Assembly: GCF_011386835.1 (NCBI RefSeq)
Contig: NC_088794.1
Location: 15,438,001-15,502,000, forward strand
Direction of reading: 5' to 3'
DNA length: 64,000 nucleotides
Origin: Chrysemys picta bellii
Lineage: Eukaryota
In this document: one piece after another, positions 5,226 through 44,739 of the stretch
How the letters are laid out: each line of letters starts with the position of its first letter
Numbering within the stretch: the stretch's first letter is position 1
Translations under genes and position numbers: made by a program
Notes under the pieces: model-generated
Seen by the model: only the letters and a program-made list of their open reading frames with translations
Told to the model about the DNA's origin: nothing
Databases searched by the model: none

Positions 5226-5953
5226 TAGGGTTACCATATTTTAAGTGTCCAAAAAGAGGACACTCCACGGGCCCTGCCCCCACCCCCTGCCCCAGTCCCG
5301 CCCCTTCCCGGCCCCGCCCCAACTCCTCCCCCTCCCCTGGACGCTTCGCCCCCCTGCCCCTCCCCCTCCCCTGCTTCCCACGAACATTTGATTCGCGGGA
5401 AGCCTGAAGCAGCAGGCAAGCTGGGGCGGGGGGGCGCGGCCCAGTCCGGCCCCCCCGGCCGAACGGCTCCCTCCAGCGAGCGGCCGGCCCAGGCCAAGAG
5501 GCTCTGGCCCCGGCGTCTCCTGCCCGGCTTGGCTCAGGCCCTGGGGCTCCGGCCCCTGGCCGAGCACCGCCAGCCCCCAATCCTGGCCCCACACCGCCGG
5601 CTCCAGCCCTCAGCCCCGGGCCGAGCACCGCGCGGCCCCGGCCCCTGGCTCCGCACTGCCCGGACCCGGCCCCCGGCTCCGTACCGCCGCCCCCAGCCAA
5701 GCACCCCTGGCCCGGCCCCAGCCCCCGGCCAAGCACCCCCAGCCCGGCCCCGGCCCCCGGCTCCGCACCGCCGGCCGAGCACCGCCGGCCCCAGCGGCTC
5801 CAGCCCCCGACTGAGCACCGCCAGTCCCTCCCTCCCTCCCTCCCTCCCTATTTTCCCGGACATGTCCGGCTTTTTGAGATTTCCCCCCGGACGGGGATTT
5901 GAGGCCCAAAAAACCGGACATGTCCGGGAAAATCCGGACGTATGGTAACCCTA
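5226..5953. mobile_element. hAT-type non-autonomous element (MITE) with GC-rich tandem interior
   Basis: Perfect 13-bp TIRs TAGGGTTACCATA / TATGGTAACCCTA, flanked by the direct repeat TTGTAAC (5219-5225 and 5954-5960). Confidence 0.85.
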
Positions 5954-9850: not shown

Positions 9851-12530
9851 AGTGCTAGTGGCTCTGCTGAATACAGGATGTGGTAAATAGTCTTATCTGG
9901 TCACAGGTAGTGGGAGAAGAAGAAGATGTAGATGTGTCAAGTATCTCTGACTAGGAGGGTTTCCTCTTCCGGCTGTGTTTTCAAATAATCTTCGCAAATT
10001 AGTAGCACTAGCCCCTGCTCTGTAACATCCTTCTCTGGACCATGCATAACTTTAGTGTTGCCAGGAAACAAATGTAACAAATAATCCATATGTGTGAGTT
10101 TTACAGGCTCCTTCATGTACCCAACATGTGTTCACACATCATGCATTCATGCACACCCTTCCTTCAGCACCCTGGTTGTTTCACAGTCTATCCTACATGT
10201 GCATACACACACTCACACACACATCTATCCATGTCAGGCTGCTGAATGCAGCATAAAATAACATGAGACGAGGTCATTCTCAGCAGGCAAAGAGGAGTGT
10301 GGGTTTGTCCGTACTCAGTGTTACTTATAGCTGGGCAGGTGAGTGAAACATATCTCTATGCTGCCCACCTAGGCTGGGGAAAATTGTTCTAGTTGAAATT
10401 GCTGCTTGTTCTGCAGACCGCTGGACATGGGAATTTCTGCAGATTTGGATGCTTGCTGTGCTTATTTATAAGCTAATTCCTCCTTGCCCTCAGTTTTCTC
10501 ACTGCCAGAGTAGAGTCCACACTCTAGGAGCACACAGATAGTACGGGTAGATGACGTGGGCCTTGACCTCTTGTATGTGTTCATTGCAAGCCAGAACTGT
10601 GTCTTTGAATGAGGCTTATTCTCAGCATAAGTAGCCTCATTCAAAGCTATGGCTCCCCACTCTACAACTTAAGGGCCTGATCCTAAATCTATTGATGTCA
10701 ATGGAATGGATATGCCTGGCGTTCACTAGGGACCTGATCCATTGGCTTTGGTGGGCTTTGGACCAGACCCCTACCGAACTTCAGTCACATCCCAATGCAG
10801 CAAGATTAATGATCATCATGTCTACCGTAATTTCACTCAGCAGAGTTCTCCTCTGAATTACACTTGGGTCAATGAGGAGTGATGCCACTGATTTCAGTGA
10901 GGTTACACCCAGGATAAATTTGGCCCAGTGTCTGTTTTTACTGAGCACACTGTGCAGAAGTATCTTTGCTTTTTCATTGTATTTTCCCCTGAGTTGTCAT
11001 ACCACTTAAGATCCTGGGTTGATTTCACTTCCACATCATGGGTTCTGGCACCAAGTTTTGTCAGCTTCGAGACAACAGACATTTAAGGAAGTGAACATTG
11101 TACATGTTGCCTTCCAAAGATTATGTTTCATTCCATTCTTTCGATTATAGCATCGTTTATTATTTACATTAGGAGGATAAAGTTATTCCCCTGATGAGTG
11201 AGCAATATAATATAGACCATTACAACGCAGGCAGTTAAAGGTCAGGCATGGGAGTGGGATCAGAAGGGCACTGGAAAGGAGCTCAAAGGTGGACCCTGAA
11301 ATAGCAGTATCACTTGGGCTGGATTTCTGTTTTTTACAGGGCACTTTTGGAACCTAGATAAAAGTTTGGAATTTATGATTGTTTTCATCTTGCCATTTTG
11401 CCTTTCTTCCGTGATAGCATATGACTATCTGTATTTCTGAGTACCCAGTTACCATGAAATACAAATGTCTGGGTCACACAAATGCTTTCCCATAACAAAC
11501 TCGGATACTTTCAGCTTAGTTTAGTTATTCTCTCTCTCTCTCTCTTTCCTAATTCCCTGCTGCCTTTTTCCACCACTTCTTTCCGCTATCCCCGAACAGC
11601 GCTGGCTCATTCTTCAGCAGTTTCGTGGTGGGGAGACCTTTCTGCACCTACATACCACGGTGATAGGTGCAGACTAAGAATCTGAAGAACTGAAAGAACT
11701 GTGCATTGCTCTCTGAATATGAGGAGGCTTGAACTTATTCTGATGTCTAGCACTAATGAATTCCACAGCTCAGGGCCTTCCATTGAAAAGGCTTTGCCTC
11801 TGCATTATGACAGGACCATCCTAGTCACAGCAGTGTCCCAAGGTGCACAGCTGTTTCAGAAGGTCAGCAGTGCAGGTCGGGGGATCTCCAAGATAGCTGA
11901 GCCCCCGCCCATTCAGAGGTTTAGTTGAAGATTAACACACCAGGAGCTGAAAGTCAAATGGGGAGCTGAAATCAAACAGAACATCCTGGTGACTTCCTCT
12001 TCACTGCCTCACTTCCTAAGAAGAGTAGAATTTGCTTATCTAGATTCACATGTGGTTGACTGACATGGGTAATTCTAAAAAAAAAAAAAAAAGTGTTCAC
12101 AGTTTTAAAATAGAGTCATTGGGAAGTGACAACAGCTAGAGCAAGTGAAGGCAGGTAAATTTTTGGCTGGGCTGCTACAAGATTTCTGACCACTTCAAAA
12201 GAAATGTTGAGAGTGCTCAAAGGAGATTGAAGGAGCCACAGAGATGTTCTGGCCTTAACAAGGAGAAATCACAAGGGAGGATCATATGGCATGGATATCC
12301 AGGTGCAATTTGCTCTTGTGCGATGCTAAGGAGGGGTAACAGCCAGTTAACTGCATGATTCCATGGGGACATAAAGTTCTGCACAGTTCTGTAGTTATTG
12401 TGAGGAAAGTCACTAGGAGAGCTGAGCTTTGGTGCCATTGTAGAAGAAAAATCCTACTCAAGCTTGTTCTTGTTGGCATCTTCCTCCTTCCTTGAGCCTG
12501 CAGAGCAGAGGAGGCACCCTGCTACTCGCC

Positions 12531-12880
12531 ATGACAAACAGCAGTTTGACTCTAAGCAGCCTGGATGCAGTTTACATCACCATCGAGTTCATTATTGGGA
12601 TATCTGCAACCGTGGGCAACATCCTGGTCATCTGGGTGGTGAAGCTGAACCCAGCTTTTCAGACAAATACCTTCTACTTCATTGTCTCCCTGGCGCTGGC
12701 CGATATAGCCGTGGGCATCCTTGTCATGCCACTGGCCATCGTGGTGAGCCTGGGAGTCGACGTCCACTTCTACTCCTGCCTCTTCATGTGCTGCCTGATG
12801 GTGGTTTTCACTAATGCCTCCATCCTGTCTCTCCTGGCTATAGCAATCGACAGGTACCTAAGAGTGAAGCTGCCCACCAG
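12531..12880 (+). CDS. ADORA3: Adenosine A3 receptor, coding exon 1 (TM1-TM3, 350 nt)
   Basis: ATG at 12531 (ctcgccATG). Encodes [20 protein letters not shown]...[16 protein letters not shown]...[15 protein letters not shown], colinear with the recalled human A3 sequence. Donor AG|gtgagt at 12880/12881, phase 2. Confidence 0.97.
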
Positions 12881-13049
12881 GTGAGTCAGTCTGTTTAGTT
12901 GTTGCATTTTCAAGTTATTGTTCATATTACATGGAAGTTCAATTAATGCTCTAATGCCCCTCCTGGTCTCCACACCCCAGCTCAGACCTGGAGGCACGCT
13001 CGTCCATCTCCCCCAGTGCTCATACCCCCTATCTCACACCTGCCTTGCA

Positions 13050-14991: not shown

Positions 14992-15601
14992 CAGGGACGG
15001 CTCCAGGCACCAGCCGACCAAGCATGTGCTTGGGGCGGCACCTTGGGGCAGGGTGGCGCTCAATTTTTTATTTTTGGATTCGGCGGCGCGGCACTCGGAG
15101 GGGAGCGGGGGCTTCGGGCGGCGTGCTGCTCGGAGGGGGGCGGGGCTTTGGGCGACGTGGCGCTCGGAGGGGGGCGGTGCTTCGGGCGGTGCTCAGGGCG
15201 GGGCTTCAGGCGGTGCAGTGCTCGGACGGGGGTGGGGGCTTCGGGCGGTGCTCGGGGGGCGGTGCTTCGGGTGGTGTGGTGCTCGGAGGGGGGGCGGGGC
15301 TTCGGGCAGTGTGGTGCTCGGAGGGGGGCGGGGGCTTCGGGCGGTACTCGGAGGGAGGGCGGGGGCTTCGGGTGGTGTGATGCTCAGGGGGGCGAGGTCT
15401 TGGGGGGGCGGGGGCTGGCGCGGTGCAGCGCTTGGAGGGGGGGCGGGGGCTTCGGGCAGTGCGACACTTGGAGGGGCGGGGCTTCGGGTTGCGTGGTGCT
15501 GGGGGGGCGGGGATTTCGGCGGCGCTCGCGGGGGGGGGGTTATGGCGGGGCAGCGCTCTTCTTTTTTGCCTGGGGCAGCAAAAAAGTTAGAGCCGGCCCT
15601 G
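14992..15601. mobile_element. hAT MITE in the ADORA3 intron
   Basis: TIRs CAGGGACGGCTCCA / TAGAGCCGGCCCTG; perfect 8-bp TSD TGTAGAGG (14984-14991 and 15602-15609); interior of repeated ggggcttcgggcgg...tgctcggaggggg units. Confidence 0.92.
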
Positions 15602-15982
15602 TGTAGAGGAATAGTATAGTCTGGGGGAATCGTGTAAATTACAGTACGAATGGAGAGGTACTTAAAGGAAAGCTGGAAGGTAGCCTGCAGAATCAGCTGC
15701 TGGTGATGGCAAACATATCCTTGCCTCAGAAATGCTGAGATCAGCTCCAGACCAGAAATGTGGTCATCCAAAACAGGCCAAATGGTAAGAGACAGACTTG
15801 GTTAAAACTAGTTAATCATTCTACATATGGTACCAAGTACTGGCAATAAGATACCTTGCCCAAAAGACCGCTGAGCACTCAAGTCAGCCACAAATGAACC
15901 TACAGCCCTTGAAGGCAGGAGTTCTTGGATGCTGCTTCACTGTCGCTAAACAATCGCCTCTAACAGGGTTGGTGTTTTTCAG

Positions 15983-16601
15983 GTACAGAATAATCACCAC
16001 GAAGAGAAGAATCTGGGTGGCTCTTGGAATTTGCTGGTTGTTGTCCTTGCTGACAGGATTTGTCCCCATGTTCGGATGGAATAAAAGGATTGACCCAAAA
16101 ATGCCCAGTGAATTCAAGTGTAAATTCACCTCTGTGATGAGCATGGACTACATGGTGTATTTCAACTTCTTCGCCTGGATCCTCATCCCTCTGATCCTCA
16201 TGTGTGCTCTGTACATCGAGATCTTCTACATTATCCGGACAAAGCTAAGTCAAAGTGCAACAAACACGAATGCAGGAGTGTTTTACGGGAAGGAGTTCAA
16301 GGCGGCCAAATCTTTGGCCCTTGTCCTCTTCTTGTTTGCGATTTGTTGGTTGCCTTTGTCCATTCTAAACTGTATTGGCCGTTTCTGTCTCAACTGTCAA
16401 ATCCCGTCGCATCTGTTGTACGTGAGCATTCTGCTGTCTCACTCCAATTCGGTCATGAACCCCGTTGTCTATGCTTGCAAGATAAAGAAGTTCAAAGACA
16501 CTTATACTCTTATTTTAAGAACCCATGTCCTGCGCATGAGTCCAAAGCTGGTCAGTTCTAGCATGGAGCAAACATCAGAGTGCGACCCAGTGACTCCTTG
16601 A
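15983..16601 (+). CDS. ADORA3: Adenosine A3 receptor, coding exon 2 (TM4-TM7 and C-tail, 619 nt)
   Basis: Acceptor gtttttcag|G restores phase. Contains [17 protein letters not shown] (Ser at 6.52, diagnostic for A3), [15 protein letters not shown] at 16599-16601. Total CDS 969 nt = 322 aa. Confidence 0.97.
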
Positions 16602-26429: not shown

Positions 26430-26879
26430 TGAACCCTTCCCGGCCAGTAAGAGAGAAGTATTTCCTGCCCTTATCTTGTCACTTATTAACACATGCAAAG
26501 TAGTTTCAGAAGCTGTTTGAAGGATCACAAAAATATAGCAGGAGGAATGAAAAGAGACAAAGGCATCATAAGCAGGGTTATCCATGTTTTATAAATAAGG
26601 AAACTGAGGCACAAAAAACAAGTGATTTCTTCAAGCTCACACCATGAGTCAGGGTGAGAACAATGGAATCTGAACTCCTGGTGCCCTGCTCTGACCACTC
26701 ACCAACACTTCCTTGTGGGACAGACCTCCACGCAGCTTAAATAAATCTGCTGATGTTATTATACATGCAATATTTGGCAACATGATTCCAAGCAGAACTG
26801 AGGGCTTGTGACAGAACTTCCATCTGCATTTGAACTGCAGGCAGCAAAGATGTCTTCATTTCACTGTGATTAGCACAAA

Positions 26880-26960
26880 CTACAGAGCAGTCTTTGACAG
26901 AGGCGTCTGTTTGAAAGTCAAACTGGCGTAGGTGATCTCATCGTTAGGACACGTAGGAAC
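26880..26960 (-). CDS. C1orf162: C1orf162 orthologue, coding exon 5 (ITIM tail)
   Basis: Acceptor atgtttgcag|, encodes VPTCPNDEITYASLTFKQTPLSKTAL* and aligns with the recalled human ESLTYASTTFK. Total CDS 393 nt = 130 aa. Confidence 0.88.
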   Translation of the reverse strand, partial: VPTCPNDEITYASLTFKQTPLSKTAL

Positions 26961-27710
26961 CTGCAAACATTATTTGGAAGTGAGGAGCTGCTGGAATTCT
27001 GACTGGATTTCCTACCCTTCATTTTGCTTTCTAGGATGCTCTCAAATGTAATCTAGTGTGAGTAGTCTGCTCCTTGTGCATGGGGAACACAGAACTTGCC
27101 AGACCGATGGTCCACTAGTCTAGTACCCTATGACCATGGTCGATATTAGAGACTTCAGAGGAATCAGTACCATAATGGACAATTATGGAATAACTTGCCC
27201 ATAAGGAAAAGCTTCTTCCTAATCATCTCAATTAGTGATTGGTTTATGCCCTGAAGCATGAGGGCTTATATATGTTTATCCTATCAACATAGCTGGGGAG
27301 TCACATAATGTCAGAGGTGATATCCCATCTCTAAGGAACTGCAGAGGGGACCGATTGAGTCCCTGAGGTATTTGGAGAATGCAGCATTTGAACCAGGGCA
27401 GGAAATATCTAGCATCCCTCTACAAACACCTCTTCCAGTCTCTGGCACCACACACGCTGATGGGGATGAGGAGGCTGCAGACATGAAAAACTGAGCACTT
27501 GGGTGGCATAGGTAGGAGTGCTTATTGCTTTCCCAGGGAAAGCACTAGCTATAAGTTAAGGTAAAAGGAACCTCTGAATAACTGTTACATTGATATGAAC
27601 AAACTTCCTGTTTTCAGTCCCAAATTCACGTTCATCATAATATAGCATTTTCTACAGAGAATCTGAAGACGTGTCATGAGACACACCAAGGAAACAGTTC
27701 CGACCTTTAC

Positions 27711-27790
27711 CTGGGTGTTTTCAGCAGGTGCCTGATGCACAGTATCTGAAGGATCCTGCTCTTGAGAAGTCTTTCGGGGTGTATTGTGAA
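27711..27790 (-). CDS. C1orf162: C1orf162 orthologue, coding exon 4 (cytoplasmic linker)
   Basis: Acceptor ccctttgtctccattacag|, 80 nt encoding (V)HNTPRKTSQEQDPSDTVHQAPAENTQ, donor CAG|gtaaag. Phase 1 in, phase 0 out. Confidence 0.85.
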
Positions 27791-28324
27791 CTGTAATGGA
27801 GACAAAGGGATAGGTACCAATGACGGCCAGGCCACAGAAGAAATCCCCGCCCTCTGGGTATGCGTTCAGAGTCATTCTAAGGCCTGGATGAATTGATCCA
27901 GTTCACGAAGTGAGGGGAAGGGCAGAGGGCACAGGAAAAATTGGGGGGCAAACTGTTCTGCAAATAGAAATAAACTTTTAATCAGGCAGGTTGGAGAAGG
28001 AAGGGCATAACCCCAAAGTGTGCAGCACAAGGCAGTGTGGGGAGAAGGAGTACAGTACGGTCTGACCTGCATCCCCTGGATTGTTTTACTAGATTGTCTG
28101 TATTATGATGGTGCCTAGCAGTGCCAGTCATTGACCAGGACTCCATTGCTCTGGGTGCTGCAGAAACACACAACAAACAGAGGGTTTGTGCCCCAAAGAG
28201 CTTACAATCGAAGGGTCTCTCTTCATTGCAGAGTTAGCCCATGGAATCAGGCCACTGCTTAGCCTAGCTTGGGTGTTAGCTGCCACACTGCAAAACCAAA
28301 CTCAAGTCATTGGACCCTCACTAG

Positions 28325-28544
28325 CAGGGCCGGCTCCAGGATTTTGGCCGCCCCAAGCAGCCACACAAACAAAAAAAAGCCGCGATTGTGATCTGCGGCG
28401 GCAATGCGGCGGGAGGTCCTTCGCTCCGAGCCGGAGTGAGGGACCGTCCGCTGAATTGCTGCTGAACAGCTGGACGTGCCGCCCCTCTCCGAAGTGGCCG
28501 CCCCAAGCACCCGCTTGGTAAGCTGGTGCCTGGAGCCGGCCCTG
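28325..28544. mobile_element. hAT MITE (same TIR family as 14992-15601) in C1orf162 intron 3
   Basis: Perfect 16-bp TIRs CAGGGCCGGCTCCAGG / CCTGGAGCCGGCCCTG; degenerate TSD CTCACTAG / CCCACTGG. Confidence 0.88.
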
Positions 28545-29900
28545 CCCACTGGGGCCAGGACTCTTGGGTTCTTGGTGTTTGCTGTAAACTGAGCCTCTCT
28601 ATGATACTTTCCCAGGGAACTGTGGGAAAATTTGTCCACCCTTCTGATCACACAGCAGGAATTGCGGGAAGGCACTGAAAGACTATCAGCACTTTACTTG
28701 AGTGGCTTAGCCTGCATCCTCATTGCAAAGTATGTGGGTTACCAGCCTGAATGAAAAGAGAAATGCCTGGCTCAAAACCACATCTCCGAAAAGGGCCAGT
28801 TAGCTTGGGTTTAAAGCATCACTAAATATGGGTGATGGGGTTTGTGTGGGGACAGGAGGGAGTTGGAGCAGAAGCAACACCTGAATAAAAGGCCGAACTA
28901 ACTTTGCAGCGAAGACAGACCCTAAGTAATCTAGTAACGTGGATCTTATCTGTGTGGATTCCCACAGGAAGACCTTTGAAAGGTGTGGATGCTGGGTGCT
29001 TTGAAAAATTTGGCTCAGGGTTTTTAATAGTCACTATTCTTGGCTACCGTGGGCTTTATGCTTCATTGCATGATGGCAAAATTACCACCATTATAGCTGA
29101 AGTGGTGCCCAGAGTCAGGAGGTAGATGAAAAGTCATTGCTACAAACAGATACTTTTGGCTACCATGTATTCAATATTCAAAGTACATTCACATGCAAAA
29201 AGACCCAGCACACCTGTCTGGTTTTTTTTTTTTTTTTTGAGTATTAACATTAAATAGACATGTGTGGACAGTTAAATATGTGTAATCCGAGTTTTCACTC
29301 AATGTAATCAAATCACTAGAAACGACAGGTCATAGGTATTGTAATGATGCTCACTCTGTAATATGATAACACCCTGTTAGAGAGATCGGATTATTATATT
29401 CCTGCTTAATGTTTCTGTAAACAAACGTTCATTGTGGTAATGATATTTTTGTTTCACATGGCAAGCGTTTGTAAACCTATTAATACTTCCTAAATACAAA
29501 AACAGTAAAAAAGAGAAGTCATTGCTGTTAATGCTGCATTCGAGCAGATATCATCTAAGCATATTTCTGAACGAGGTGGCATTATAACATTCCCAAAGTT
29601 ATGCTTAAAAAGATAAAGGGCCTACCCTGAACAAACATGGCAAGGAGATTCTAAGTGAACACTGTCACTTCCTCCATGAAAAACCTGCACCCCCAGCAAC
29701 AGCATTTGAATGTGGAACACCTGAGATACTCAGTCCTAGATCCTAAAAGGCATTTAGGCATCTAAATCCAATTGATCTCAATGTGAGTTAGGTGCCTAAA
29801 TACCTTCGAGGACTTGGCCCTTGGAAACCAGCTGTCCTCTGCCACAAGCTATGGCAGTCCAATATCCTGCAAGCATCATTCCTCATTGCACATCCCTTAC

Positions 29901-29995
29901 CTTTCCTTTTCCTGATAAAGTAGATGGTTGTAAATACCAGCATGGTCAATAGGACGGCAGAGATACAGGCCACCAATATGTAGAGGAACTCAGGT
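29901..29995 (-). CDS. C1orf162: C1orf162 orthologue, coding exon 3 (transmembrane helix plus basic stop-transfer)
   Basis: Acceptor tgcactaacag|, 95 nt encoding PEFLYILVACISAVLLTMLVFTTIYFIRKRK, donor AAG|gtaagg. Similar to the recalled human HLILAFCAGVLLTLLLIAFIFLIIKSYRK. Syntenic position and strand match. Confidence 0.88.
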
Positions 29996-31564
29996 CTGTT
30001 AGTGCACAGAATACAGTGGGTTAGAAACAAACAGCTCCCCCCTTTCCTACTCTCTGTCCTGGCTACCACCCTGGCCAATACTATCTCAGCACCTCAGGGC
30101 CTTATGCTGAGTTCAAACACGAATGTTACCAAAACCTCCGGAACCACGCCCGGTGCACTGAATTCAAATCAACAGAGATCGATGTTATTGGATAACAAAA
30201 TCACATGTCTACAGAGAGCTGCTATTTAGCGGGCCAAAATTCCAAATGAGAGGGAAGAAGAAAGAACCTAAGAAAAACCTGTGTGATCATATGAGATGTT
30301 TGCAACTAATAAGTGTGTCATTCAGATATTGTTATTGGCATTAAAAGCATTACCACAGGTTATGCAAGCTGCAATATGGACCCTCACATTCATAGGAATA
30401 AATATGGGTAACAAGATCAGCAATTTATTTAATTCTAAGTAATGGGAAGAAACTTGATCTAAACAGACCAGATTCAGCCCTGATATAACTTCATGAAATT
30501 ACACCTACTTACACCAGGACTGAGCCTGGCCTGGTAATTGGAAAGCATTGTACTAGAGACCATAAAACCTATCTCCCATTGAAGTTGATGTCTTGAAGTG
30601 GAGCAGGATGAGGACCTCAGTGTATGTTTTAAAATGTTTTGGCTTTTCACACCCATTACGGAGCCTGAGTTTCAAAGACATAAAAATGCTACATTCAGAA
30701 AATGAACATAAATCTGATGAAAAAGGTAAGTATGTGAAGCAAACATACACATACAAAAATATCCTTTCACTTCAGATTTAAACTCAAATATATACAACCA
30801 CCCGACCACAGGGATATTCACTGAAGGCATTAATCTGCTGGAGGCAGATTATCCAATTCACACACTAAGAAATGTATTTCAGTTTGCAACCTGCATCTCT
30901 TGTGGCTGGAGAAAATCTCTGGGGGCGGCGGCTGCGGGGGTGAATGGGGAGACAGTAATGGGTGTTTTTACTAACAGTTTATATCTTTGAAGGAGTCATG
31001 AGGTATATTTCTGCTCACTGTACATTTATGGATGACAAGATTCAACTCTCATATGCTCCAGTTTAAATCAGGAGTTACTCTGCTATAGTCAATGGAGTCA
31101 CTCCTGATTTACAACAGCGTAAATAGGAGTAGAATTTGGCCTGACATTTTCATTTCCGTGAAATTTTGAAAAGCTAAACAGTTTATCACAGCATCACCAC
31201 TGGGCATATCACATCAGCCTGTCAACTTACATTGTTCTTCTATTATCTCATTTAAATCAAAATGTGGTGGTGAATGTATCAGAGAGTTATCATTTTAATT
31301 TAAAAACATCTCTTTTGGAATCTGATGTAGTACTTACTTCCAAGCTCTTTATGACTTACTGGTTATGTGGTTTCCATTAGAATTGCATTAAGGGCTGACG
31401 AAGAATACATATTGTTTGAGTATCAGCAATATAAATATATAGATTCTGAGCAACCCTTTACAATCAGAAACATTAAAGTCACTGCCCGTAACAACTCTCC
31501 TTGGAGTCTGTGAATGATCTCACGCCACCATGACAATTAACCCGCAAAAATAGTTCTTGTTTAC

Positions 31565-31658
31565 TTATCAAATATGGTCTTGTCTCTTGTAATCATGACT
31601 ACAGTAGTTGTGCTGGAACTGGTGCTGGCAGTGGTGGTGCTGGCTGCAGGTGATGGTG
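31565..31658 (-). CDS. C1orf162: C1orf162 orthologue, coding exon 2 (Ser/Thr-rich ectodomain)
   Basis: Acceptor ttcacttctag|, 94 nt encoding PSPAASTTTASTSSSTTTVVMITRDKTIFD, donor AA|gtaaac. Phase 1 in and phase 2 out fit both neighbours. Confidence 0.8.
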
Positions 31659-32009
31659 CTAGAAGTGAATACAAAGAGCATTAAAACATGTTATCTGTTT
31701 CTTAAAATAAGTTTCATTCTGCAGCAGTGTTTCCAGTATTGGATCTGTTCTGCCCAGAGGCCCATGACCCACAAGGGAGCTATTAATGTACATTAGTGTG
31801 AGAACGTTCTTTAAAATCTTCTTTTTATGTTTAATAATTGGAATGAAAGCTAGACTATGGTAAATCATGCTGCGAGATGTACACAGCCACACTTTCCCTG
31901 CTGCCCAATGATGACCAAATATTATTACCAACTACACTAATGTAGCTCTGTTGAAGTCTTGGGATTACACCAGTGTAACTGAGAACAGAATTTGGTTCAT
32001 TTCCTCCCT

Positions 32010-32340
32010 GTGTTGGGTTGGACCCCCCGTCAGGGATGTCACCTGATGTACTGTGGTTTTACTGAGCCTCTCCTGCTCCACCAGCCTGGATTCCCTCTCC
32101 CTGTGTCGCTAAATTAGGCTCTCCGGTCTCCTGCAGCACGCACACACACAGGTAGGGCCACAACCAGCTGCAAACACAGACTGAAATCAGCGCTGTGTGA
32201 GAAGGCTCCCCCAGCACTCACGTGCACACCCCTTTTGGGAAATATATATTGTTTTGCACTGTATAGAAAAATCTGCACAGCGCAAACTCATATCATAAGC
32301 ATATTTTCATAAAGGATATGGAGTGTAACATCACACCCCC
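32010..32340. mobile_element. Putative LTR-type repeat fragment in C1orf162 coding intron 1
   Basis: gggatgtcacctgatgtactg...ttgcactgtatagaaaaatctgcacagcgc resembles a common turtle interspersed repeat (recognition only). Confidence 0.35.
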
Positions 32341-32357
32341 ATGCAAGATATAGTTAC

Positions 32358-32400
32358 CTGGATGTGATTTGTGATTGTTTTTTGAGCTCGAACTTCCCAT
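32358..32400 (-). CDS. C1orf162: C1orf162 orthologue, coding exon 1 (MGSSSSKNNHKSHP)
   Basis: Acceptor ctttttatccttag at 32419-32420, 18 nt of UTR, ATG at 32400, donor CAG|gtaact in phase 1 matching the next exon. The MGxxxS start resembles the recalled human MGGNGS. Confidence 0.72.
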
Positions 32401-32739
32401 TCTCTCTTCCACTGGTAACTAAGGATAAAAAGTATGTATATACTGTTTAGAAAACTCCGTAGATTCTGGGTCTCTGATTTCTAAGATCATTAGATTGTGT
32501 TCTAAAGTCCTGGTCTGATTCATGGAGGCCAGGTGTCTCTGGGTCATTATTAATTACTAGTATTAATAGTTTGTACTGGAAACCAAAACTCTGGGTCTAA
32601 ACAGCCCCAAACTCTGGGTCCACTCTAATTTGTACTTCTCTGGAGGCTTTCATCCAAGGAGCTCAAAATGCTTAAACTGCAATGGATTAAGCCTCATGAC
32701 ATACCTGTGAGCTAAGAAAGTATTATCCACATTTTAGAG

Positions 32740-36951: not shown

Positions 36952-37023
36952 TTATATTGCCACCCGTGTGCTCTTCGATAACATCTTCAAATCGGAGATG
37001 CACTTGGCAATACTCTCCTTCTC
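36952..37023 (-). CDS. ATP5PB: ATP synthase subunit b, exon 7 (terminal)
   Basis: ttttgcag| EKESIAKCISDLKMLSKSTRVAI* (TAA). Total CDS 759 nt = 252 aa. Confidence 0.96.
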   Translation of the reverse strand, partial: EKESIAKCISDLKMLSKSTRVAI

Positions 37024-37504
37024 CTGCAAAAGGAAATGGATAGACTTTCACAGGCCTTGAAACAACTCAGGGAAGAAAATCATTTGCATGAACAATGTGT
37101 GCACACCAGCCATATTCACATTTTGCTGGGTAAAAATTGAAGCCAGGTACAGAAAGGATCTAGTTCCAACTCATGCACGATTAATAATTTGCAAAACCAT
37201 CTAAGAAAGTCATGGAGATGGAAATCCAAATATTGGCCTATGTTCAAGCATTAGCAAATGACAATCTAGATGATTAAAATCTGATCCTAAGTCAGCCTGC
37301 ACAATTCACAGGAGACTGCAGGATGTTGGCAAGTGTCAGGCCAACCTATCTAGAGGAACAATAAGCTTTGGGAAGAGTGAGTGGATCCTCCAAAGTGCAG
37401 GTAGAACTGACCGAGGAGAGATGACAGAGTTACGTAAATGAACTCCCCAATCTAGTGCACTTCAACTCCATATCTAGGTCTACCCATTTTCTTCACCTCC
37501 CAGT

Positions 37505-37580
37505 GTGGAGACAACAAGGAGTCTGGTGGCACCTTAAAGACTAACAGATTTATTTGGGCATAAGCTTTCGTGAGTAAAAG
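37505..37580. mobile_element. Penelope-like terminal fragment in ATP5PB intron 6
   Basis: ggagtctggtggcaccttaaagactaacagatttatttgggcataagctttcgtgagtaaaa is a recognisable reptile repeat terminus. Confidence 0.55.
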
Positions 37581-38053
37581 TATGGAGACAGTCCACTGAA
37601 GCGTCTTTAGCCCTGTGAGGTACCAAGTCATCTTAAAAATCCACATTTAAACATCCATGCTTTACATCAAGGGATGCTGCAAGGAAGTACCCCAGCCTCC
37701 TGGGCACACCTCCCACCCACAAGCCTACTATTGTGCAGGAAAGTATTCTCTCAACTGGAGTTACTGGACCTGATTTTCAAAAGCAATCAGCAACCGCAAC
37801 CCAAACAAAACCAGGAAATGCTGCAAGTGCTCAGCATTTCTGGAAAAATCAAAAAACACCCCCCCCCCCCATTGGTTTTGCTCAAAAAAGTAGGAATGTG
37901 CCTTGGGTGCTCTGGAAGCCAGCCAGAGAAGAGTTAGACAAAGAAGTACTAGTCATGTTTGGCCAAAGATGTCAGGCAGCTGAGGAAAACGGTATTCTGT
38001 ATTAGGACATGGGAGGCACAGTGAACTGCTAGAAGCTCAGAAGCTTAAAGTAC

Positions 38054-38233
38054 CTGTTGAGCAGTGAGGCTCTGGACGACGTTTTTCTCTATCCAGTTGA
38101 TCATGTGATCTTGTTCCTTACGACGTGTCAGTTGCTGTACAGCAATTTGATAGTCTAGCCGCTTTTTCACTTCATTGTATACGGTGAGCAGCCTTTCTCG
38201 GTAGTTAGTCTCTAGCAGCATAGCAACGTTATT
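38054..38233 (-). CDS. ATP5PB: ATP synthase subunit b, exon 6
   Basis: 180 nt, NNVAMLLETNYRERLLTVYNEVKKRLDYQIAVQQLTRRKEQDHMINWIEKNVVQSLTAQQ. Confidence 0.97.
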
Positions 38234-39660
38234 CTAGTTAGAGAAAAGATGCATTTCAGTTTTCCATTCTGACTTTTCTGACCATCTTATATTTCAGATT
38301 TAAGATTTTTATTAAAGCTAATGTTAAAAAATTATATAAGCTAAGGTTAAGAAAAGTGTCTGTACATCTGGGTATAGTTTTTAGATTACCCACAGATACA
38401 AAGTGTGTTTTAAAAGTCATAAGATACATCAGCAATAATCCAAATTTAGATGAATACATTTAATACAGTTTAGATATTAGCATCCTAGTATTCAGATACA
38501 TCAATCCTGAAAAGTTATACAGAGTTGGTTGTGGAAAGCAAATACATCAACGAGTGAAAATTATCCCTCAGTAGTTGAGAATTTAGGGTAGGTTGTCCAT
38601 TAGAAAATACAATCCATCCGGAAAGTATTTAAGTTACTTTCCCGACCGCACTTCTTATTGGCACTCCAGCTTATCCCTCCCTGGTATTGCCAATGTCCAG
38701 TGATGTGTTCTAGGTAGATGTCCCTCGACTACTAACTCACATGTTGCTTTTCAAAGGAACCTAGAGTATTTTACAAAAATTGGCTATGTGTTCATTCACA
38801 GATGGAGGCACAGAGAAGTTAAATGACTTCCCAAGGTCTCTGAGACAGGAACTGAACCCTAGAATCCCAATTCTATATTATATGCTAAGACTATAGAGTC
38901 TGTCAAAAGCGAGAGTCACCCTATTTAAATATAGGTAGCATTAGTTAAGTGGATATGGTATTTTAAAAAATGGGCAGCATTTTTAGGCTTTTCAACTGAG
39001 AATGTCTTTATACTGAAAATAAATAAATGGCAAAAATCTAGCATAATCCAGCTCTACACAGGAGCTCTCACCATAATGTTCTTTTAAAATAGACCATGTA
39101 ATTTTCTAGCTTTAAAAAAAATGGAAAAAAATGTCACATCAACACCCACATGGGTTATCAGCGGGGTTGGAGCCTTTAGATCCACAATACAGACCTCTGC
39201 CACTGGAGCTTCGGGAGTGGCAGCTACAGCAGTAGGTTGATCAACACAGAGGCCTCCCACTGCCAAATTTCAAGTCTCTGCTCCATAACTTGCAGGTTCT
39301 AGAACTTCTCAAATGAAAGGTCGCCAGAACGTTTTAACCATGTATTTTTCCCTAGCTTCGTTTTCCAGAAACGAACCATTTTCAAGAAAGATTAAAAAAA
39401 TTAAAAAAGCCTGGGGCAGATACCCAAGATGGAAAAATTAAAGCCTGAATAATTCTGGTAAAGTTACATGCAACTGAAAATAGGGTCTTATAATGGGAAA
39501 TGTCATACAACTTTAGTTGCCTATGTGACCTGCCACACCTAATGTACACATAGTCAACGTTTGCTGCTTGTTAAGTACATAGAGACAGTCAGGGTCTGTG
39601 GTTATGAGGGCTACGTAACTATGTAAAAAGGTATTTGTAAAGTTATTTGTAATAACGTAC

Positions 39661-39786
39661 CCGCTTGGCATCAAAGAGATAATTGCGGCCTTCAACCCTC
39701 CATTGCTCCTTCTTTTCCTGTTCAATCATTGACTCCAAGTGGTTGATTGAATCATTTTTCACAGCTAAAGCTTTGGCAACTTTCTC
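39661..39786 (-). CDS. ATP5PB: ATP synthase subunit b, exon 5
   Basis: 126 nt, EKVAKALAVKNDSINHLESMIEQEKKEQWRVEGRNYLFDAKR; ttcag| and |gtacgt. Confidence 0.95.
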
Positions 39787-41198
39787 CTGAAATAAGAAGG
39801 AACTTTAAAATCCAGACTAAAACATAAGGAAGAGAAAGATCAACTGCTGATCTGATTGTTCAAAACGGCATCATCTCCTTAAACTGTAACTTATCAGGTC
39901 TGAAGGTGAAGAGGGGCAGCCAAGAACAGTAAATGCCATTGAAGTTGCCATGTTTAAAGCTTAAGCCTGGTCTACACTTAAAACATCCATAAATGCAGTT
40001 TTACCAGCACAGATGAGTTTCTGTCAGTATAACTTATTTCACTCAGGGACCCAATATAAGCCACAAGGCAAGCATTTTTCTGATAAGGCCTTGTGTATAC
40101 TGGAAAAGGTTTACCAGTACAGTTATACCTGCAAACAATCCTAGAGCAGACGTAGCTTATTCTGGCAAAGAGGTTTTTACTAGTAGAGCTTATACCAGGT
40201 TACCCAACTGAAATAAGCTACATCAACAAAAGCATTCCTATGCCAGTATAACTCAGGTGTACAGTATGTGTTACTTAGGCCAAGACTAGAAAGAAACTAT
40301 AGTTATACCAGCAACACTTTTCTAGCATAGAAAAGGCCTTTGCAGAAAAGAACCAAGGAACACATGTAAGAGTACAGAAATAAAGTGGCAGGCCCCCAAA
40401 ATATGAAGAATGAGTCAACGAGGTCTCTAACTTCCAGACTAAACTCCATTTCATTCTGAAGTAGATGCAATAAAGACTGCAATGCACTGGCTCACAATGC
40501 ACCTACATGGTTTAGTTATTTCTAAAAAAACCCACACCAACTAAAAAGCAGCAAAGGTTGAAAGTCAGAGGCTTATGCTCCCCAAGCATCCAAGCATTCA
40601 CCCACTGCTGAAAATGGGACTTAAGATGCTTTTGAAAAATTTTACTAAAATTTTACATATATGGATATTGATTCATGACACCAATTATAAATGCATACTT
40701 TGCCCTCAGCCCTTTAATTTTAGATTGACACCCCTGACAAAATACCATAAAATAAGCATTTTGCAAACAGGTGGCTTCTTAACATGCATGACAGAGTCAA
40801 GTTCTGGCTCCCTTAGCCAATAGGGTCTGGAAGTACTGTTCTGATAAGTTTCATTTATTTCTTCAGGATTAGTAGGCTATCAGCCAAAATGCAAGAACAC
40901 TCAGTTGCGAGACAGTCACTACTGTACCCAATTCTACATCGAACCTGCCCATGAATTTAGATTAAGTTGCCTACCCTGTAAGATTTATTTGGCAGAGATC
41001 ACCTAGTGTAAAGTGCCATGTAGGCTTTCAGCACTGTACAAAGAGAACAATCATTAAAAAAAGCCATTACTTTTCTTCAACATTAGAAGAAGAACTGGTG
41101 AATTTTTTTTTTTAAACCACACGCAACTGAACACCTGGAATTGTTGCATTGAGAGTTAGTGTCAAGTTAGATTATGTTCTTCTTTTCCCCCCTCTTAC

Positions 41199-41362
41199 CT
41201 CATTGAGCTTATCAGCAAAAGCTGCTACATCACCCCCATATTTTTTAACTATATAGATGATGACTCCCACCATGCAGGCACCTGCAACTGTTTCATGGTT
41301 GATTATATAGATTTCCTTGGAGAGCAAGTAGCACAGTAGCCCAGTCCCCAGCACATAGGGCC
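41199..41362 (-). CDS. ATP5PB: ATP synthase subunit b, exon 4
   Basis: 164 nt, PYVLGTGLLCYLLSKEIYIINHETVAGACMVGVIIYIVKKYGGDVAAFADKLNE |gtaaga. Confidence 0.97.
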
Positions 41363-42068
41363 CTAAAATAGATAAAAGGATACTGTTTTAAATACATTAC
41401 TTGGAAACAGACCCATTCCAAGTTCAGTTGGCTGAAAGCAGAGCTAGGCATTTTAATTTTTTTAAGTTGCATAGGAATATTGAGGGACTTGTCACTCCTC
41501 TCCAAAAAAAGGATGACTCAGGTAGAAGAACCAGATTGGGAATGGTGTAAGATGGAGTTTCCTCTGAGATATACTGCTATATGAAGACTTCCATCACCAA
41601 AAAGTAACCATGGAATACCTAATATGTTATCTGTAGCCTCTGCTGCCCTCTCAGCATAGGGCATTAACCTCCATGTTTAGAGGTTACTGGGAGCCAGGAG
41701 CTGCAAAAATGTTTCTGCTAATCAGGCCCATCACACACACTTAGGACTTATCCTTTACCGAAAGCTAAAGTCTGTAAGGTGCCCTCTGATCAACTCCCCC
41801 ATTTGCTTCCCAAACTTCAAAAGAGTTGAAGGTTCTCAGTATTTCAGAGGGAAACTTATTTCCATACAGGACCAAGCCCATAATTAGTGAAATATCCTAA
41901 ACAGTGTGCGTTCTTTCCCACCAAAGCAAATTCATCATCCACATCAATGTCAAGTTACTCACACCAGTAAAACCTAAACTTTTCAGACACTTTGCCTTAC
42001 TTGATGGCCATAGCAGGTGTGCAGCACCAATAATCAAAATGAAACCCACAAAGGTACAACATACTAAC

Positions 42069-42214
42069 CTGTGACTCCTGTTTTAGGATACAGGAATTGG
42101 AAAAATTCCTCTGGGATCAACCCATGACGAACTTGCCCTCCTTTCTCAGGGAGAGGTGGTAAAGGAACCAAGCACTGCTGACCAGTGTGAAATGGTCTAG
42201 ATGCATGCAATACA
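42069..42214 (-). CDS. ATP5PB: ATP synthase subunit b, exon 3
   Basis: 146 nt, VLHASRPFHTGQQCLVPLPPLPEKGGQVRHGLIPEEFFQFLYPKTGVTG; canonical AG/GT. Confidence 0.97.
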
Positions 42215-43327
42215 CTATGAGTAAAAAAGAGATTTTCTGTGAAGTGTATTCCTTTGCAAAAAAAAAAAAAGTCTCAAATTAAGTTAGGACACTTGTTCTT
42301 ATATGCGGGCCCCAAAATCTTTTCAGTTACACAGAAGTCAAAACTGTATACCAAACATTCAAAATAGACTTTGGTTAACGCACATACAAACTTACCCTTG
42401 GTAAACATCTATTTATTTGCCTAGATTGGGTAGATTTTACCCAGTTTCACATAAGCAAATGGGCACACATGGAGGTTGCAGGTATATGGAGGGAAAAAAA
42501 AACCTTCACGATCTTGTCTCAAGATTCACAGCAGAGGCTTCTTAAATGAGAAATTGTAGTAAATCTATACTTCTTCAAGAACACTTTTCATTCCTTTAAT
42601 TTTCTACTGAAGGATTTCAAGATGCTTAACAAAAAATTAGTCTTACACATGCATAAAGGAAGCAAATTCTATTACCACAATTTAACAGGTAAATAGACTG
42701 AAAAATTAGGTGACGTGCTCATGGTCCAACAAACTCAAGCATCCCAACCTCCAGAATCCTGATCATATTAAAAAGTTTGATTAGAAGCTACCTGAGTGTT
42801 GCCATAGCAGGGAGGATAATATCACTCACATAGCTGCCAGAAGGTAGTTCAAAATATTAAGGCCTGAGTAACACACAAAGTTGCACCATTCAAGCTAAAT
42901 GTTATTTTATACCAATTTAAACTGGTCTTACTTTGTTGATAGGTTTGAGCTGAAATAAGCTTTTTGATATTGTATTTGCTGGTACCTATAATAGACAGAA
43001 GCTAACTAAACCAACATAACCAGTTTGGAAGTTACCCCCTCTATAAAGTGCCTGGAGATCTACTCACAAAAAGTGCGATATAAAAACTAGACATCATCAT
43101 CACCACTCTAGTAAACAGATCAATGAGTGTATACACTATTGTGTTGAATTAAACTGGCATAGGAGTTAAACCAGCACAACCTCAGTGCTTCAGCAAATGC
43201 TTCACCTAACCTAAAGCAGGATTCACAGAAGCGACTTTAGCTCCATGCCGAGGTAGGTCATTTCTAAGCAGCCAGCAACTCTAACCCCCAGCCCCAGGAA
43301 CGGGCCCCGAGAGTCTTAATTCCTAGT

Positions 43328-43468
43328 CCCCCCTCCCCGAGGAGAAAGAGAACCCAGGAGTCCTGACCTCTCCACCCCCCCCTCCCCGAGGAGAAAGAGA
43401 ACCCAGGAGTCCTGACCTCTCCACCCCCCCCTCCCCGAGGAGAAAGAGAACCCAGGAGCCCTGACCTC
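43328..43468. repeat. 49-bp minisatellite, about 2.8 copies, in ATP5PB intron 2
   Basis: The unit ccccctccccgaggagaaagagaacccaggagtcctgacctctccacc recurs at 43334, 43383 and 43432. Confidence 0.95.
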
Positions 43469-43524
43469 CCTCCCCCGCCCGAGGCAGGGCCAGAGCCCCG
43501 GCGCCTCGCCCGGGCCGCACTTAC

Positions 43525-43567
43525 CCCACGGAGAGGGAGGGAGCCAGGCTCTTCAGCGCCGCCGGAG
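43525..43567 (-). CDS. ATP5PB: ATP synthase subunit b, exon 2
   Basis: ctcccgcag| APAALKSLAPSLSVG |gtaagt; 43 nt, phases 1/2. Confidence 0.9.
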
Positions 43568-43674
43568 CTGCGGGAGGACACAGAGCGATCAGTGCAGGCC
43601 CCGGGTCCGGGCCCGCCCCCGCTGGGCCTCCCCAGGGCTCCCCCCGCACCCCCCCGGGGACGGGCCCCACTCAC

Positions 43675-43702
43675 CGGCGCGCAGGCCCAGGCGGGACAGC
43701 AT
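43675..43702 (-). CDS. ATP5PB: ATP synthase peripheral stalk subunit b, exon 1
   Basis: ATG at 43702, MLSRLGLRA (start of the mitochondrial presequence), donor G|gtgagt. Confidence 0.93.
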
Positions 43703-44036
43703 TGTCGGCAGAGCTGCGGCGCTGCCCTCTCTGTCCCGGTGACCCCGGCGGCGGCGGCGGCAGCAAGATGGCCACAGCAAAAGTAGCCTCGCGAGAGGAG
43801 CTTAGGAACGCCCAACATCTCGCGAGCTGTGGGGGCGGGAGCGGTAAACGGGTCGCGAGAAGAATCGTAATCTCCTGTAATGGGGCGAAGGGCGGGGGTT
43901 CTGGGAAATCTCGCGAGAGGAGCGCCGGGGCGCCGGCAGGGGGCGTGGCCCAGTCGGGGTGTCCCGGGAGCAGCACGTGGAGGCTGCCGCTGTCCGTCTG
44001 CTCGTGCCGCGGGGGTGGGAGTCGCGCGCTGCCGCC

Positions 44037-44151
44037 ATGCAAGAGCCGGAGCAGCCCGACGGGGGGGCCTCGGGCGACCCCGAGTGGAACATCCCGCCCA
44101 ACGCGCCCGCCTGCATGGAGCGCCACCTGGACGGGGCCCACTACCGCCCAG
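44037..44151 (+). CDS. WDR77: WD repeat protein 77 (MEP50), exon 1
   Basis: gccgccATG Kozak at 44037; MQEPEQ...EWNIPPNAPACMERHLDGAHYRP; donor G|gtaccc; 115 nt. Confidence 0.95.
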
Positions 44152-44739
44152 GTACCCCAGCGACCCCTGCCCCCCCAGGGCATGTCCTTCCCATGCACCC
44201 TGCCCTGCGCCCCTCGAGCATTGTCCCACGCTGTGCCCCCAGGGCACCTCTTCTGTCCTGGGCCTGAACCCCACTCTGCTCCCCAGCCCTGACCACCCTG
44301 TGGCCCGTGCACATCCTGTCCCAGGCACACGTGAACTTCCCCGGGTGATCCCAAGCACTGCGTTCTGGGGGATCCCGAACATCATCCGTCCCTGGTGGGG
44401 GACAGTGCATCACAGCTACTGCCCAGTGATGCTCCCCATGCCACCTCCTGGGATACACTGCAGCCAAGTGTTACCCTCCTGAGAGTGAGCTTCTGAACAG
44501 TCTCACACCCAGAGAAAGAGAGTCCCTGGGTTGTCTATCCCTGTGCCTCTCTTGGGACCTTGCAGGGCTCTACAGTTTTCTCACACCTGCCTACAGTGCA
44601 ACCACTGGGCACTGCTACCCCATCCCCCCAACATCTGTTCATTCAGTGCAGGTTTCAAGGACACCATTCATACCCCAACAGAATTTAGAAATGGAATAGA
44701 AAAATCTACGCTCCTGAGTGACACGGTTAAAGTGACCTA

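Follow-up and report, generated by a model that had tools for sequence, protein, structure and literature searches.

LST1 is a myeloid adaptor of 97 amino acids, of which the two ITIMs bind SHP1 and SHP2 (PMC8111073). Two other membrane proteins are relevant for their N-termini: ANKRD22 is a myristoylated, hairpin-like monotopic protein of lipid droplets (PMC8478909), and Lunapark is a myristoylated protein that spans the membrane twice (PMC3817238).

The gene described here, from the painted turtle Chrysemys picta bellii, is the orthologue of C1orf162 (I830077J02Rik in mouse). Like LST1/A, its product is very small, lacks a signal peptide, and has one transmembrane helix and a disordered tail of the ITIM type (PMC8111073). 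The expression of LST1/A in myeloid cells and its many non-productive splice forms (PMC8111073) are also akin to what we propose for C1orf162, and LST1 is in these respects its closest working analogue. However, the ectodomain of LST1 is very short and contains a dimerising Cys and a palmitoylation site, whereas C1orf162 has a Ser/Thr-rich arm of 45 residues and a myristoylation-type N-terminus. Likewise, the LST1 gene is located in MHC class III, whereas the C1orf162 gene lies beside ADORA3. Homology with LST1 was rejected, as searches for Pfam LST1 gave no match at E≤1 for the turtle protein and none at E≤0.01 for 38 family members. With ANKRD22 and Lunapark, C1orf162 has in common the Met-Gly start, Ser6 and a hydrophobic membrane segment further downstream, with Lys7 present in C1orf162. 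Unlike C1orf162, these two proteins are without tyrosine signalling motifs, and the myristoylation of C1orf162 is a predicted one.

The window that we analysed, a stretch of 64,000 nucleotides, coincides exactly with part of assembly GCA_011386835.2. A preceding sequence-only reading had joined five minus-strand exons with intron phases 1/2/1/0 into an ORF of 130 amino acids, and we could reproduce this model from the sequence. The coding lengths add up to 43+94+95+80+81 = 393 nt, and all introns are of the GT..AG type. The gene, its neighbours and one repeat are located as follows:

36952..42400, minus strand: ATP5PB (Mt_ATP-synt_B), 3' part; lies upstream of C1orf162 on the same strand (converted coordinates)
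32400-32358, minus strand: coding part of exon 1, 43 nt, with the ATG at 32400 and the first exon base at 32418
31658-31565, minus strand: exon 2, 94 nt, Ser/Thr/Pro-rich N-terminal region
29996..31564, minus strand: intron 2, 1569 nt
29995-29901, minus strand: exon 3, 95 nt, transmembrane helix followed by R-K-R-K
28325..28545, strand not given: SINE-like interspersed repeat within intron 3, outside the gene product
27790-27711, minus strand: exon 4, 80 nt, polar disordered linker within the tail
26960-26880, minus strand: coding part of exon 5, 81 nt including the stop codon
15894..16601, plus strand: last coding exon of ADORA3, tail to tail with C1orf162 (convergent)

Exon 1 is preceded by an AG acceptor at 32420-32419 and starts with 18 nt of 5'UTR; its codons at 32400-32380 encode M-G-S-S-S-S-K, and its donor reads CAG/GTAACT. 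The donor of exon 2, TAA/GTAAAC, is the weakest among the four. The transmembrane helix in exon 3 covers approximately residues 49-73 (positions 29988-29914), the sequence I-T-Y-A-S-L occupies residues 113-118 (positions 26936-26919) with Tyr115 at 26930-26928, and the 3'UTR reaches at least 26708. The product comprises a Ser/Thr-rich N-terminus, one hydrophobic helix, RKRK and the tail bearing ITYASL. In the AlphaFold2 model the helix extends over residues 47-79 at a pLDDT above 90, and everything else is disordered. The earlier claims that a signal peptide is absent and that there is a single transmembrane helix were both borne out. The protein has the build of a transmembrane adaptor (the functional class of LAT, PAG, LST1 and SIT), with a short arm that has no ligand-binding fold, one transmembrane segment and a disordered tail with a tyrosine motif. 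Pfam searches with single-exon translations gave nothing useful. At the repeat in intron 3, depth is in the thousands and loose ends are numerous at 28325 and 28544-28545.

The gene had been presented as hidden, but an identical model of 130 amino acids is already available at NCBI: the ORF product matches, residue for residue, the protein that NCBI lists for Chrysemys picta bellii as 'uncharacterized protein LOC101953258', and Pfam contains the family as PF27946. The open reading frame that surrounds exon 3, scored over its exon part alone, led to this database protein. The name C1orf162 had been assigned correctly in the earlier reading. Indeed, a precomputed Pfam assignment gives a PF27946 'C1orf162' match for the identical NCBI product. 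A word-based search with the LOC101953258 protein reached turtles only, and an exhaustive profile search was needed to establish orthology. A profile of six turtle proteins matched proteins of alligator, birds, opossum, axolotl and caecilian, most of which are named C1orf162 homolog (duck, jay, opossum, axolotl and caecilian at E-values from 1e-8 to 9e-4), and a wider profile found 57 members, including the 'RIKEN cDNA I830077J02' protein of Peromyscus (E 2e-14). The loci of Pangshura, Macrochelys, alligator and Lagopus were used for comparison of gene order. C1orf162 lies between ATP5PB and ADORA3 in the turtle and occupies the same position in ptarmigan (Lagopus) and in alligator, where the order is WDR77-like, ATP5PB, C1orf162 and a 7tm_1 gene; the human order is also ATP5PB–C1orf162–ADORA3. 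The neighbouring receptor scores 259 bits with the A3 receptor vs 203 bits with A1, and its first coding exon is located within 12492-12884, with a match to 7tm_1 positions 1-91. Because of the PF27946 assignment, the profile matches to named homologues and the conserved ATP5PB–C1orf162–ADORA3 synteny, the orthology is solid. The adjacency to ADORA3 had also been pointed out. It is real (exon 15894-16601), but it represents ancient synteny and is no evidence for a shared function.

The members of the family have a common build that consists of an MG start, a Ser/Thr-rich arm, one helix, a basic cluster and a tail with a tyrosine motif. Sauropsid copies are shorter (116-152 amino acids) and have the proximal tyrosine motif only, whereas those of mammals and amphibians have a distal motif in addition. 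The turtle genes carry just 'uncharacterized protein' as their NCBI name.

Turtle C1orf162 is transcribed and spliced. RNA contigs of two to three studies exactly reproduce the joints 31658>32358 (intron 1; two runs), 27790>29901 (intron 3; three runs) and 26960>27711 (intron 4; two runs), all of which read CT..AC. In contrast, the contigs of four runs did not show the joint 31565>29995 between exons 2 and 3, and assembled contigs of four runs continued through intron 2. Of the predicted junctions, those of introns 1, 3 and 4 are thus confirmed by RNA, whereas that of intron 2 is not. The run type 'RNA' had been a guess, and the exact splice joints show that the runs have cDNA content; the data are assembled contigs, from which ratios of spliced to retained forms are not derivable. 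Retention of intron 2 leads to a stop directly after exon 2 (…F-D-K-stop). Since intron 2 is kept in most of the assembled turtle RNAs, where it would stop translation before the helix, the output of C1orf162 may be limited or regulated at this splice. A weak exon 2 donor of the same type as in the turtle is spliced in birds, and in a bird RNA contig the four coding introns are all spliced out and a separate 5'UTR exon is included. In the turtle, the sequence on the exon-1 side of joint 31658>32358 is only 63 letters long, which fits an exon start at 32418-32420. Because of this and of the separate exon in the bird contig, we infer at least one further 5'UTR exon upstream of exon 1.

The ITIM consensus is (I/V/L/S)-x-Y-x-x-(L/V/I), and the I-T-Y-A-S-L of the turtle tail fits it, as had been claimed; a match to the consensus arises in 2.5% of shuffled-tail trials. 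A lack of conservation of the tyrosine or of the hydrophobic residue at +3 in other sauropsids had been named beforehand as refuting the interpretation, but both are kept in all of the 45 sauropsid proteins (reptiles and birds). These carry E-[VI]-x-Y-[STA]-[TS]-[LV]-x-[FI], so that E(-3), V/I(-2), Y, L/V(+3) and F/I(+5) are all kept, and the remainder of the C-terminal arm drifts around them. This constraint would agree with the SH2 domains of SHP-1 and SHP-2, which prefer hydrophobic residues at -2, +3 and +5, and with the ITYADL motif of SIRPα. In amphibians and mammals, a distal tyrosine motif is present at the C-terminus, which in mammals is the better conserved of the two; therian mammals have a degenerate proximal motif, with Met at Y+3 in Peromyscus and loss in several marsupials. 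This distribution would fit tetrapod ancestors with a second, C-terminal tyrosine motif that was kept in amphibians and mammals and is absent in sauropsids. A search of the tail against the PDB gave no match. In the literature search, no tyrosine phosphorylation or SH2 binding was reported for any C1orf162 protein, nor was C1orf162 linked to ITIM, SH2 or adaptor function. The earlier description of C1orf162 as a conserved inhibitory adaptor that recruits SHP-1/SHP-2/SHIP was thus overstated.

By analogy with LST1/A, we propose that the helix of turtle C1orf162 would span the membrane in an N-out/C-in orientation, that a Src-family kinase would phosphorylate the motif tyrosine, and that the phospho-motif would then dock the tandem-SH2 phosphatases SHP-1/SHP-2 at the myeloid cell membrane. 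We consider the chances that this proposal is right to be about even. In the mouse, expression of the gene extends across myeloid cells and to marginal-zone B cells (PMC3844401). The conserved tyrosine motif makes an immune-inhibitory role of C1orf162 plausible, but it is unproven.

Among turtles, the coding sequence evolves approximately as fast as the introns, with exon identities (0.88-0.98) no higher than intron identities (0.92-0.95) among three families and an overall dN/dS of about 0.9-1.4, and the tails of Macrochelys and Pelodiscus end 9 codons early. Together with the retention of intron 2, this might be expected of a gene that is decaying or marginal, is hardly constrained if at all, and yields mostly non-productive transcripts. 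We regard this as very unlikely, since seven turtle species of both suborders retain the ORF, every splice site and the motif in intact form, the dN/dS of the transmembrane region is about 0.45, the early stops fall after the motif, and birds do splice the same weak donor type. Moreover, fast evolution is usual among immune surface proteins. The motif itself could have another role. Y-A-S-L also fits a YxxΦ sorting signal for clathrin adaptor complexes and lies some 40 residues away from the membrane within a disordered tail, while the distal mammalian motif is at the extreme C-terminus, where many lysosomal sorting signals sit. C1orf162 would in that case be a small trafficking or endosomal membrane protein that recruits no phosphatase. 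This possibility seems doubtful, because the constraint at -3, -2 and +5 (45/45) exceeds that of a plain YxxΦ signal, which does not need these residues, but fits SH2 recognition. Sorting-signal and SH2 roles can coexist in one motif. It is unlikely that the phospho-motif instead docks another SH2 protein, such as Csk, a Src-family kinase or an adaptor, which would make C1orf162 a transmembrane adaptor that is not necessarily phosphatase-inhibitory. Y-A-S-V type motifs in SIT and PAG bind Csk, and the best local Pfam similarity is indeed to the SIT adaptor family (SIT1, PF15330; 24.3 bits, E 4.6e-5; 9 of 38 members at E≤0.01), a similarity that takes in the helix and the tail's first half; for one turtle orthologue, a PF15330 match has been precomputed. 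However, the score is below the curated Pfam cut-off of 27.6 bits, and matches to other mucin-like single-pass families, such as TMEM154 (12/38) and glycophorin A (9/38), are equally weak. The SIT similarity is therefore largely a matter of composition, and SIT membership was rejected. SIT has a signal peptide and five tyrosine motifs. Furthermore, hydrophobic residues at -2 and +5 favour SHP-type SH2 domains.

On which side of the membrane the motif lies is a matter on which two features disagree. The charges flanking the helix (+3.3 on the C-terminal vs -1.3 on the N-terminal side) favour C-in by the positive-inside rule, with C>N in 37 of 38 family members, and a juxtamembrane Cys, the kind of residue that is palmitoylated in transmembrane adaptors, is found beside the basic cluster in 29 of the 38 orthologues, the painted turtle having a Tyr where other turtles have this Cys. 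The N-terminus, M-G-[SG]-x-x-S-K, argues for N-in: M1 and G2 (38/38) are the sole invariant columns of the family, and S6 (36/38) and K7 (31/38) are largely kept. M-G-x-x-x-S-K is a classical N-myristoylation consensus, and the turtle M-G-S-S-S-S-K agrees with it in the Met-Gly, the small uncharged residue at 3, the Ser/Thr at 6 and the basic residue at 7; our literature search retrieved no paper connecting C1orf162 with myristoylation. An N-terminus of this type would be held in the cytosol, which conflicts with the N-out/C-in topology needed for an ITIM. The protein might then be of type II, with the tail outside and no ITIM, or monotopic, with both ends in the cytosol. Helix-breaking residues in mid-segment (Pro in two turtles, Ser-Gly in most other orthologues) would be consistent with this, and ANKRD22, with its predicted single transmembrane segment (PMC8478909), and myristoylated Lunapark (PMC3817238) are precedents. 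Nevertheless, this reading of a myristoylated protein with a cytosolic N-terminus appears unlikely, given the flanking charges and the Cys. Moreover, the hydrophobic segment of 22-30 residues is too short for a usual hairpin, the AlphaFold2 helix is single and straight, an exoplasmic tail would leave the conservation of the motif unexplained, and few myristoylated integral membrane proteins are known (PMC3817238). A wider view drawn from these sequence features, which we find quite doubtful, is that C1orf162 proteins could be unrecognised, tetrapod-wide lipid-anchored inhibitory adaptors with a myristoylated, SH4-like M-G-x-x-x-S-K, an SHP-type ITIM in the tail, both ends cytosolic or a dual topology, and gating at intron 2 in sauropsids. 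Such an adaptor would not be the plain type III membrane protein implied by the annotation, and the gating would consist of poor splicing combined with an in-intron stop.

For the turtle genome the gain is modest: the gene model itself was already public, and what is new is a proper name for LOC101953258. Well over a hundred papers on expression list C1orf162 as a marker of immune infiltration or of macrophages, and this literature assigns no function to the protein. Our analysis provides three handles on it: its ITIM-type motif shows extended conservation across some 300 million years of sauropsid evolution, a second tyrosine motif is specific to amphibians and mammals, and the myristoylation-type N-terminus is invariant. 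Should the motif prove to recruit SHP-1/SHP-2, C1orf162 would stand beside LST1 among the small inhibitory adaptors of myeloid cells.

The five minus-strand exons that the sequence-only reading had joined into a C1orf162 gene were all recovered:

32400-32358, minus strand, C1orf162 coding exon 1, AG/GT bounds
31658-31565, minus strand, C1orf162 coding exon 2, AG/GT bounds
29995-29901, minus strand, C1orf162 coding exon 3, AG/GT bounds
27790-27711, minus strand, C1orf162 coding exon 4, AG/GT bounds
26960-26880, minus strand, C1orf162 coding exon 5, AG/GT bounds

These exons total 393 nt, with intron phases of 1/2/1/0, and their spliced translation gives a protein of 130 aa. Residues 1-45 are rich in Ser, Thr and Pro, a 25-residue hydrophobic segment is followed by R-K-R-K, and the polar tail bears I-T-Y-A-S-L at residues 113-118. 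Inspection of the 130-aa sequence revealed no hydrophobic stretch at the N-terminus. The AlphaFold2 model, based on the 38-sequence family alignment, contains a single confident helix at residues 47-79 (pLDDT >90), the remainder being disordered. Since the exons, phases, protein build and one-helix model agree, the original observation was correct as written, including the splice bounds, the open reading frame, the transmembrane (TM) segment, RKRK and ITYASL.

The gene had been described as hidden, which it is not. When the exon-3 open frame served as a reference query and the exon portion alone was scored, P0001 was found, a 130-aa NCBI protein named 'uncharacterized protein LOC101953258 [Chrysemys picta bellii]' that is identical to the spliced ORF. 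The 25.5-kb genomic locus of P0001 matches part of the window exactly, which places the window in painted-turtle assembly GCA_011386835.2. The public record of the turtle gene is thus missing the name alone, not the model. The name C1orf162 itself was borne out by a Pfam match, by profile searches and by synteny. The product matches Pfam family PF27946, named 'C1orf162'; this family postdates our local Pfam copy and the match was taken as precomputed. A word-based search with P0001 reached seven turtle proteins only. An exhaustive search with a profile built from six turtle proteins finds an alligator protein (E 1e-15) and proteins named 'transmembrane protein C1orf162 homolog' by NCBI in duck, jays, opossum, axolotl and caecilian, and a wider profile led to 57 members, among them the Peromyscus 'RIKEN cDNA I830077J02 gene'. 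ATP5PB is located upstream of turtle C1orf162 in the same orientation, and the gene downstream, on the other strand, is indeed the proposed neighbour ADORA3:

12492-12884, strand opposite to C1orf162, ADORA3 coding exon, PDB matches
15894-16601, strand opposite to C1orf162, ADORA3 coding exon, PDB matches

These two exons match A3 receptors best in PDB (259 bits versus 203 for A1). The order in alligator is WDR77-like, ATP5PB, C1orf162 and a 7tm_1 gene, and that in Lagopus is likewise, which is consistent with orthology to C1orf162.

Several other features were observed in the window and at loci of other species. A G-rich tandem array with units of ~35-115 bases (15082-15509) lies in the ADORA3 intron, just upstream of the last exon. 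A 373-aa Gly/Ala/Arg-rich ORF without a Pfam match (43264-44385), which includes three copies of a 49-base tandem repeat that are 97% alike (43328-43476), most likely represents G+C-rich promoter sequence on the far side of ATP5PB rather than a gene. A Ser- and Pro-rich open frame of 720 aa on the minus strand (61821-63983), also without a Pfam match, resembles a single large exon from a gene for a disordered protein. At positions 1071-5585 of the Lagopus muta (ptarmigan) locus L007, the entire C1orf162 lies within the span of an opposite-strand 7tm_1 (ADORA3-like) model, and this locus is much more compact than that of the turtle. Among public turtle models (P0022 of Mauremys mutica, P0005 of Macrochelys and locus L005), one of 303 aa fuses ATP5PB with C1orf162, and another is an isoform whose frame continues into intron 4 with loss of the Tyr motif.

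Assembled contigs of four RNA runs from four studies were examined over 26700-32500. The joints 31658>32358 (two runs), 27790>29901 (three runs) and 26960>27711 (two runs) were found exactly, all with CT..AC ends. Because these read GT..AG on the minus strand, C1orf162 is transcribed from there, and three of its four predicted junctions are confirmed. The first joint has just 63 letters on the exon-1 side, as would be the case if the exon began at the AG acceptor preceding 32418 and one or more 5'UTR exons lay upstream. For intron 2, the joint 31565>29995 was absent from the contigs of the four runs. Contigs spliced at introns 3 and 4 continue unbroken from exon 3 into intron 2 (run X11 record 9, X1 record 6 and X13 record 20), and X1 record 8, which is spliced at intron 1, extends past exon 2 into intron 2. 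Intron 2 (29996-31564) is covered in all four runs, whereas most of introns 3 and 4 is uncovered in three of them. The intron-2-retained form meets a stop codon immediately after exon 2; the contigs give no proportions of this form versus the spliced, productive one, which may be rare, tissue-specific or signal-dependent in the turtle. The intron 2 donor, TAA/GTAAAC, is the weakest of the gene's introns, with no G at -1 or at +5, and the pyrimidine tract is poor (12/20). Alligator and Lagopus share this donor type, and in a bird RNA contig placed on the Lagopus genome all four coding introns are removed and a 5'UTR exon is present. A short interspersed repeat in intron 3 (28325-28545), one end of which bears an A/T run, reached depths of thousands in each of the four runs, and many contigs end at its borders; a segment of intron 1 (32132-32325; depth 13-316 versus single digits alongside) is probably another repeat copy.

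Aligned loci of painted turtle, Pangshura and Macrochelys showed exon identities of 0.88-0.98, no higher than those of the introns (0.92-0.95). The Nei-Gojobori dN/dS was ~0.9-1.4 overall and ~0.45 in the TM exon; in the N-terminal arm it was well above 1, on very few changes (9-14 non-synonymous versus 0-1 synonymous). The ORF, splice sites and motif are intact in every turtle examined. These rates are compatible either with relaxed constraint or with the rapid evolution that is common to immune surface proteins.

The tyrosine motif is conserved across sauropsids, as the proposal of an ITIM had demanded for Tyr and Y+3. All 45 sauropsid tails (seven turtles, alligator and birds) keep E(-3), V/I(-2), Tyr, S/T/A(+1), L/V(+3) and F/I(+5), while the flanking residues vary; shuffling of the painted-turtle tail gave an ITIM consensus match in 2.5% of trials. 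A YxxΦ sorting signal needs less constraint than is seen here at -3, -2 and +5, so that the motif looks like an SH2 site, and the pattern fits the SH2 preferences of SHP-1 and SHP-2. In Macrochelys and Pelodiscus the protein stops 9 codons early, directly after the motif, which indicates that the last nine residues are dispensable. Amphibian proteins combine the proximal motif with a second one, also built around Tyr, close to the C-terminus. Peromyscus and marsupials conserve the distal motif (…V-Y-A-Q-I-K), their proximal one having degenerated or been lost. Judging from these tails, the ancestor probably carried both motifs, the distal one of which is missing from sauropsids.

The closest working analogue is LST1/A, a myeloid adaptor with one TM segment and many splice forms, which has 97 aa and two ITIMs binding SHP1 and SHP2 (PMC8111073); no homology of C1orf162 to LST1 was detectable. 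Among the families of the local Pfam copy, the SHP2-interacting adaptor SIT is the most similar. Membership of this family was rejected (24.3 bits against a cut-off of 27.6), and since TMEM154 and glycophorin A match equally weakly, the similarity mostly reflects the Ser/Thr-rich arm, TM segment and basic cluster. A fish Ig-type receptor of 380 aa (Centropristis striata, P0012) matches the turtle profile over stalk, TM segment and ITIM tail (E 3e-5), and the build of C1orf162 resembles this receptor minus the ectodomain. The top-ranked literature treats C1orf162 as an expression marker. Its functions were considered largely unknown in 2024 (PMC11408335). In mouse, expression of the gene extends across myeloid cells and includes marginal-zone B cells (PMC3844401). 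Our targeted, non-exhaustive literature searches found neither a functional study nor any link of C1orf162 to an ITIM, SH2 binding, adaptor function or myristoylation.

The family's best conserved part is the extreme N-terminus:

32400-32380, minus strand, codons for M-G-S-S-S-S-K

Mean column identity of the family is 26%, and the sole invariant columns are Met1 and Gly2 (Gly2 in 38/38 members, Ser6 in 36/38, Lys7 in 31/38). In models with a longer N-terminus (alligator and axolotl), M-G-G is internal, at the aligned position. The pattern M-G-x-x-x-S-K corresponds to the classical consensus for N-myristoylation. A myristoylated Gly2 would be cytosolic, in conflict with the N-out/C-in topology that is predicted from the flank charges (C-side +3.3 versus N-side -1.3, the C-side being higher in 37/38), from a juxtamembrane Cys in 29/38 members and from the Tyr motif. 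Precedents for myristoylated proteins with a membrane segment are few: the myristoylated ANKRD22, with a single predicted TM segment, is monotopic and hairpin-like (PMC8478909), and Lunapark is also myristoylated (PMC3817238).

The proposal that C1orf162 is an inhibitory adaptor with an ITIM is strengthened by motif conservation that is both deep and extended. The topology conflict, the degeneration of the same motif in mammals and the non-productive retention of intron 2 in the turtle RNAs examined weaken it. We consider the ITIM a reasonable, apparently unpublished hypothesis for a candidate motif. If the N-terminus were cytosolic and the helix spanned the membrane, the 'ITIM' would be extracellular and the proposed recruitment of SHP-1, SHP-2 or SHIP would fail; if the hydrophobic segment were monotopic, that mechanism would survive and the protein would be more unusual. 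C1orf162 is an ordinary annotated gene, yet a source of specific tests for a 'dark' myeloid protein.
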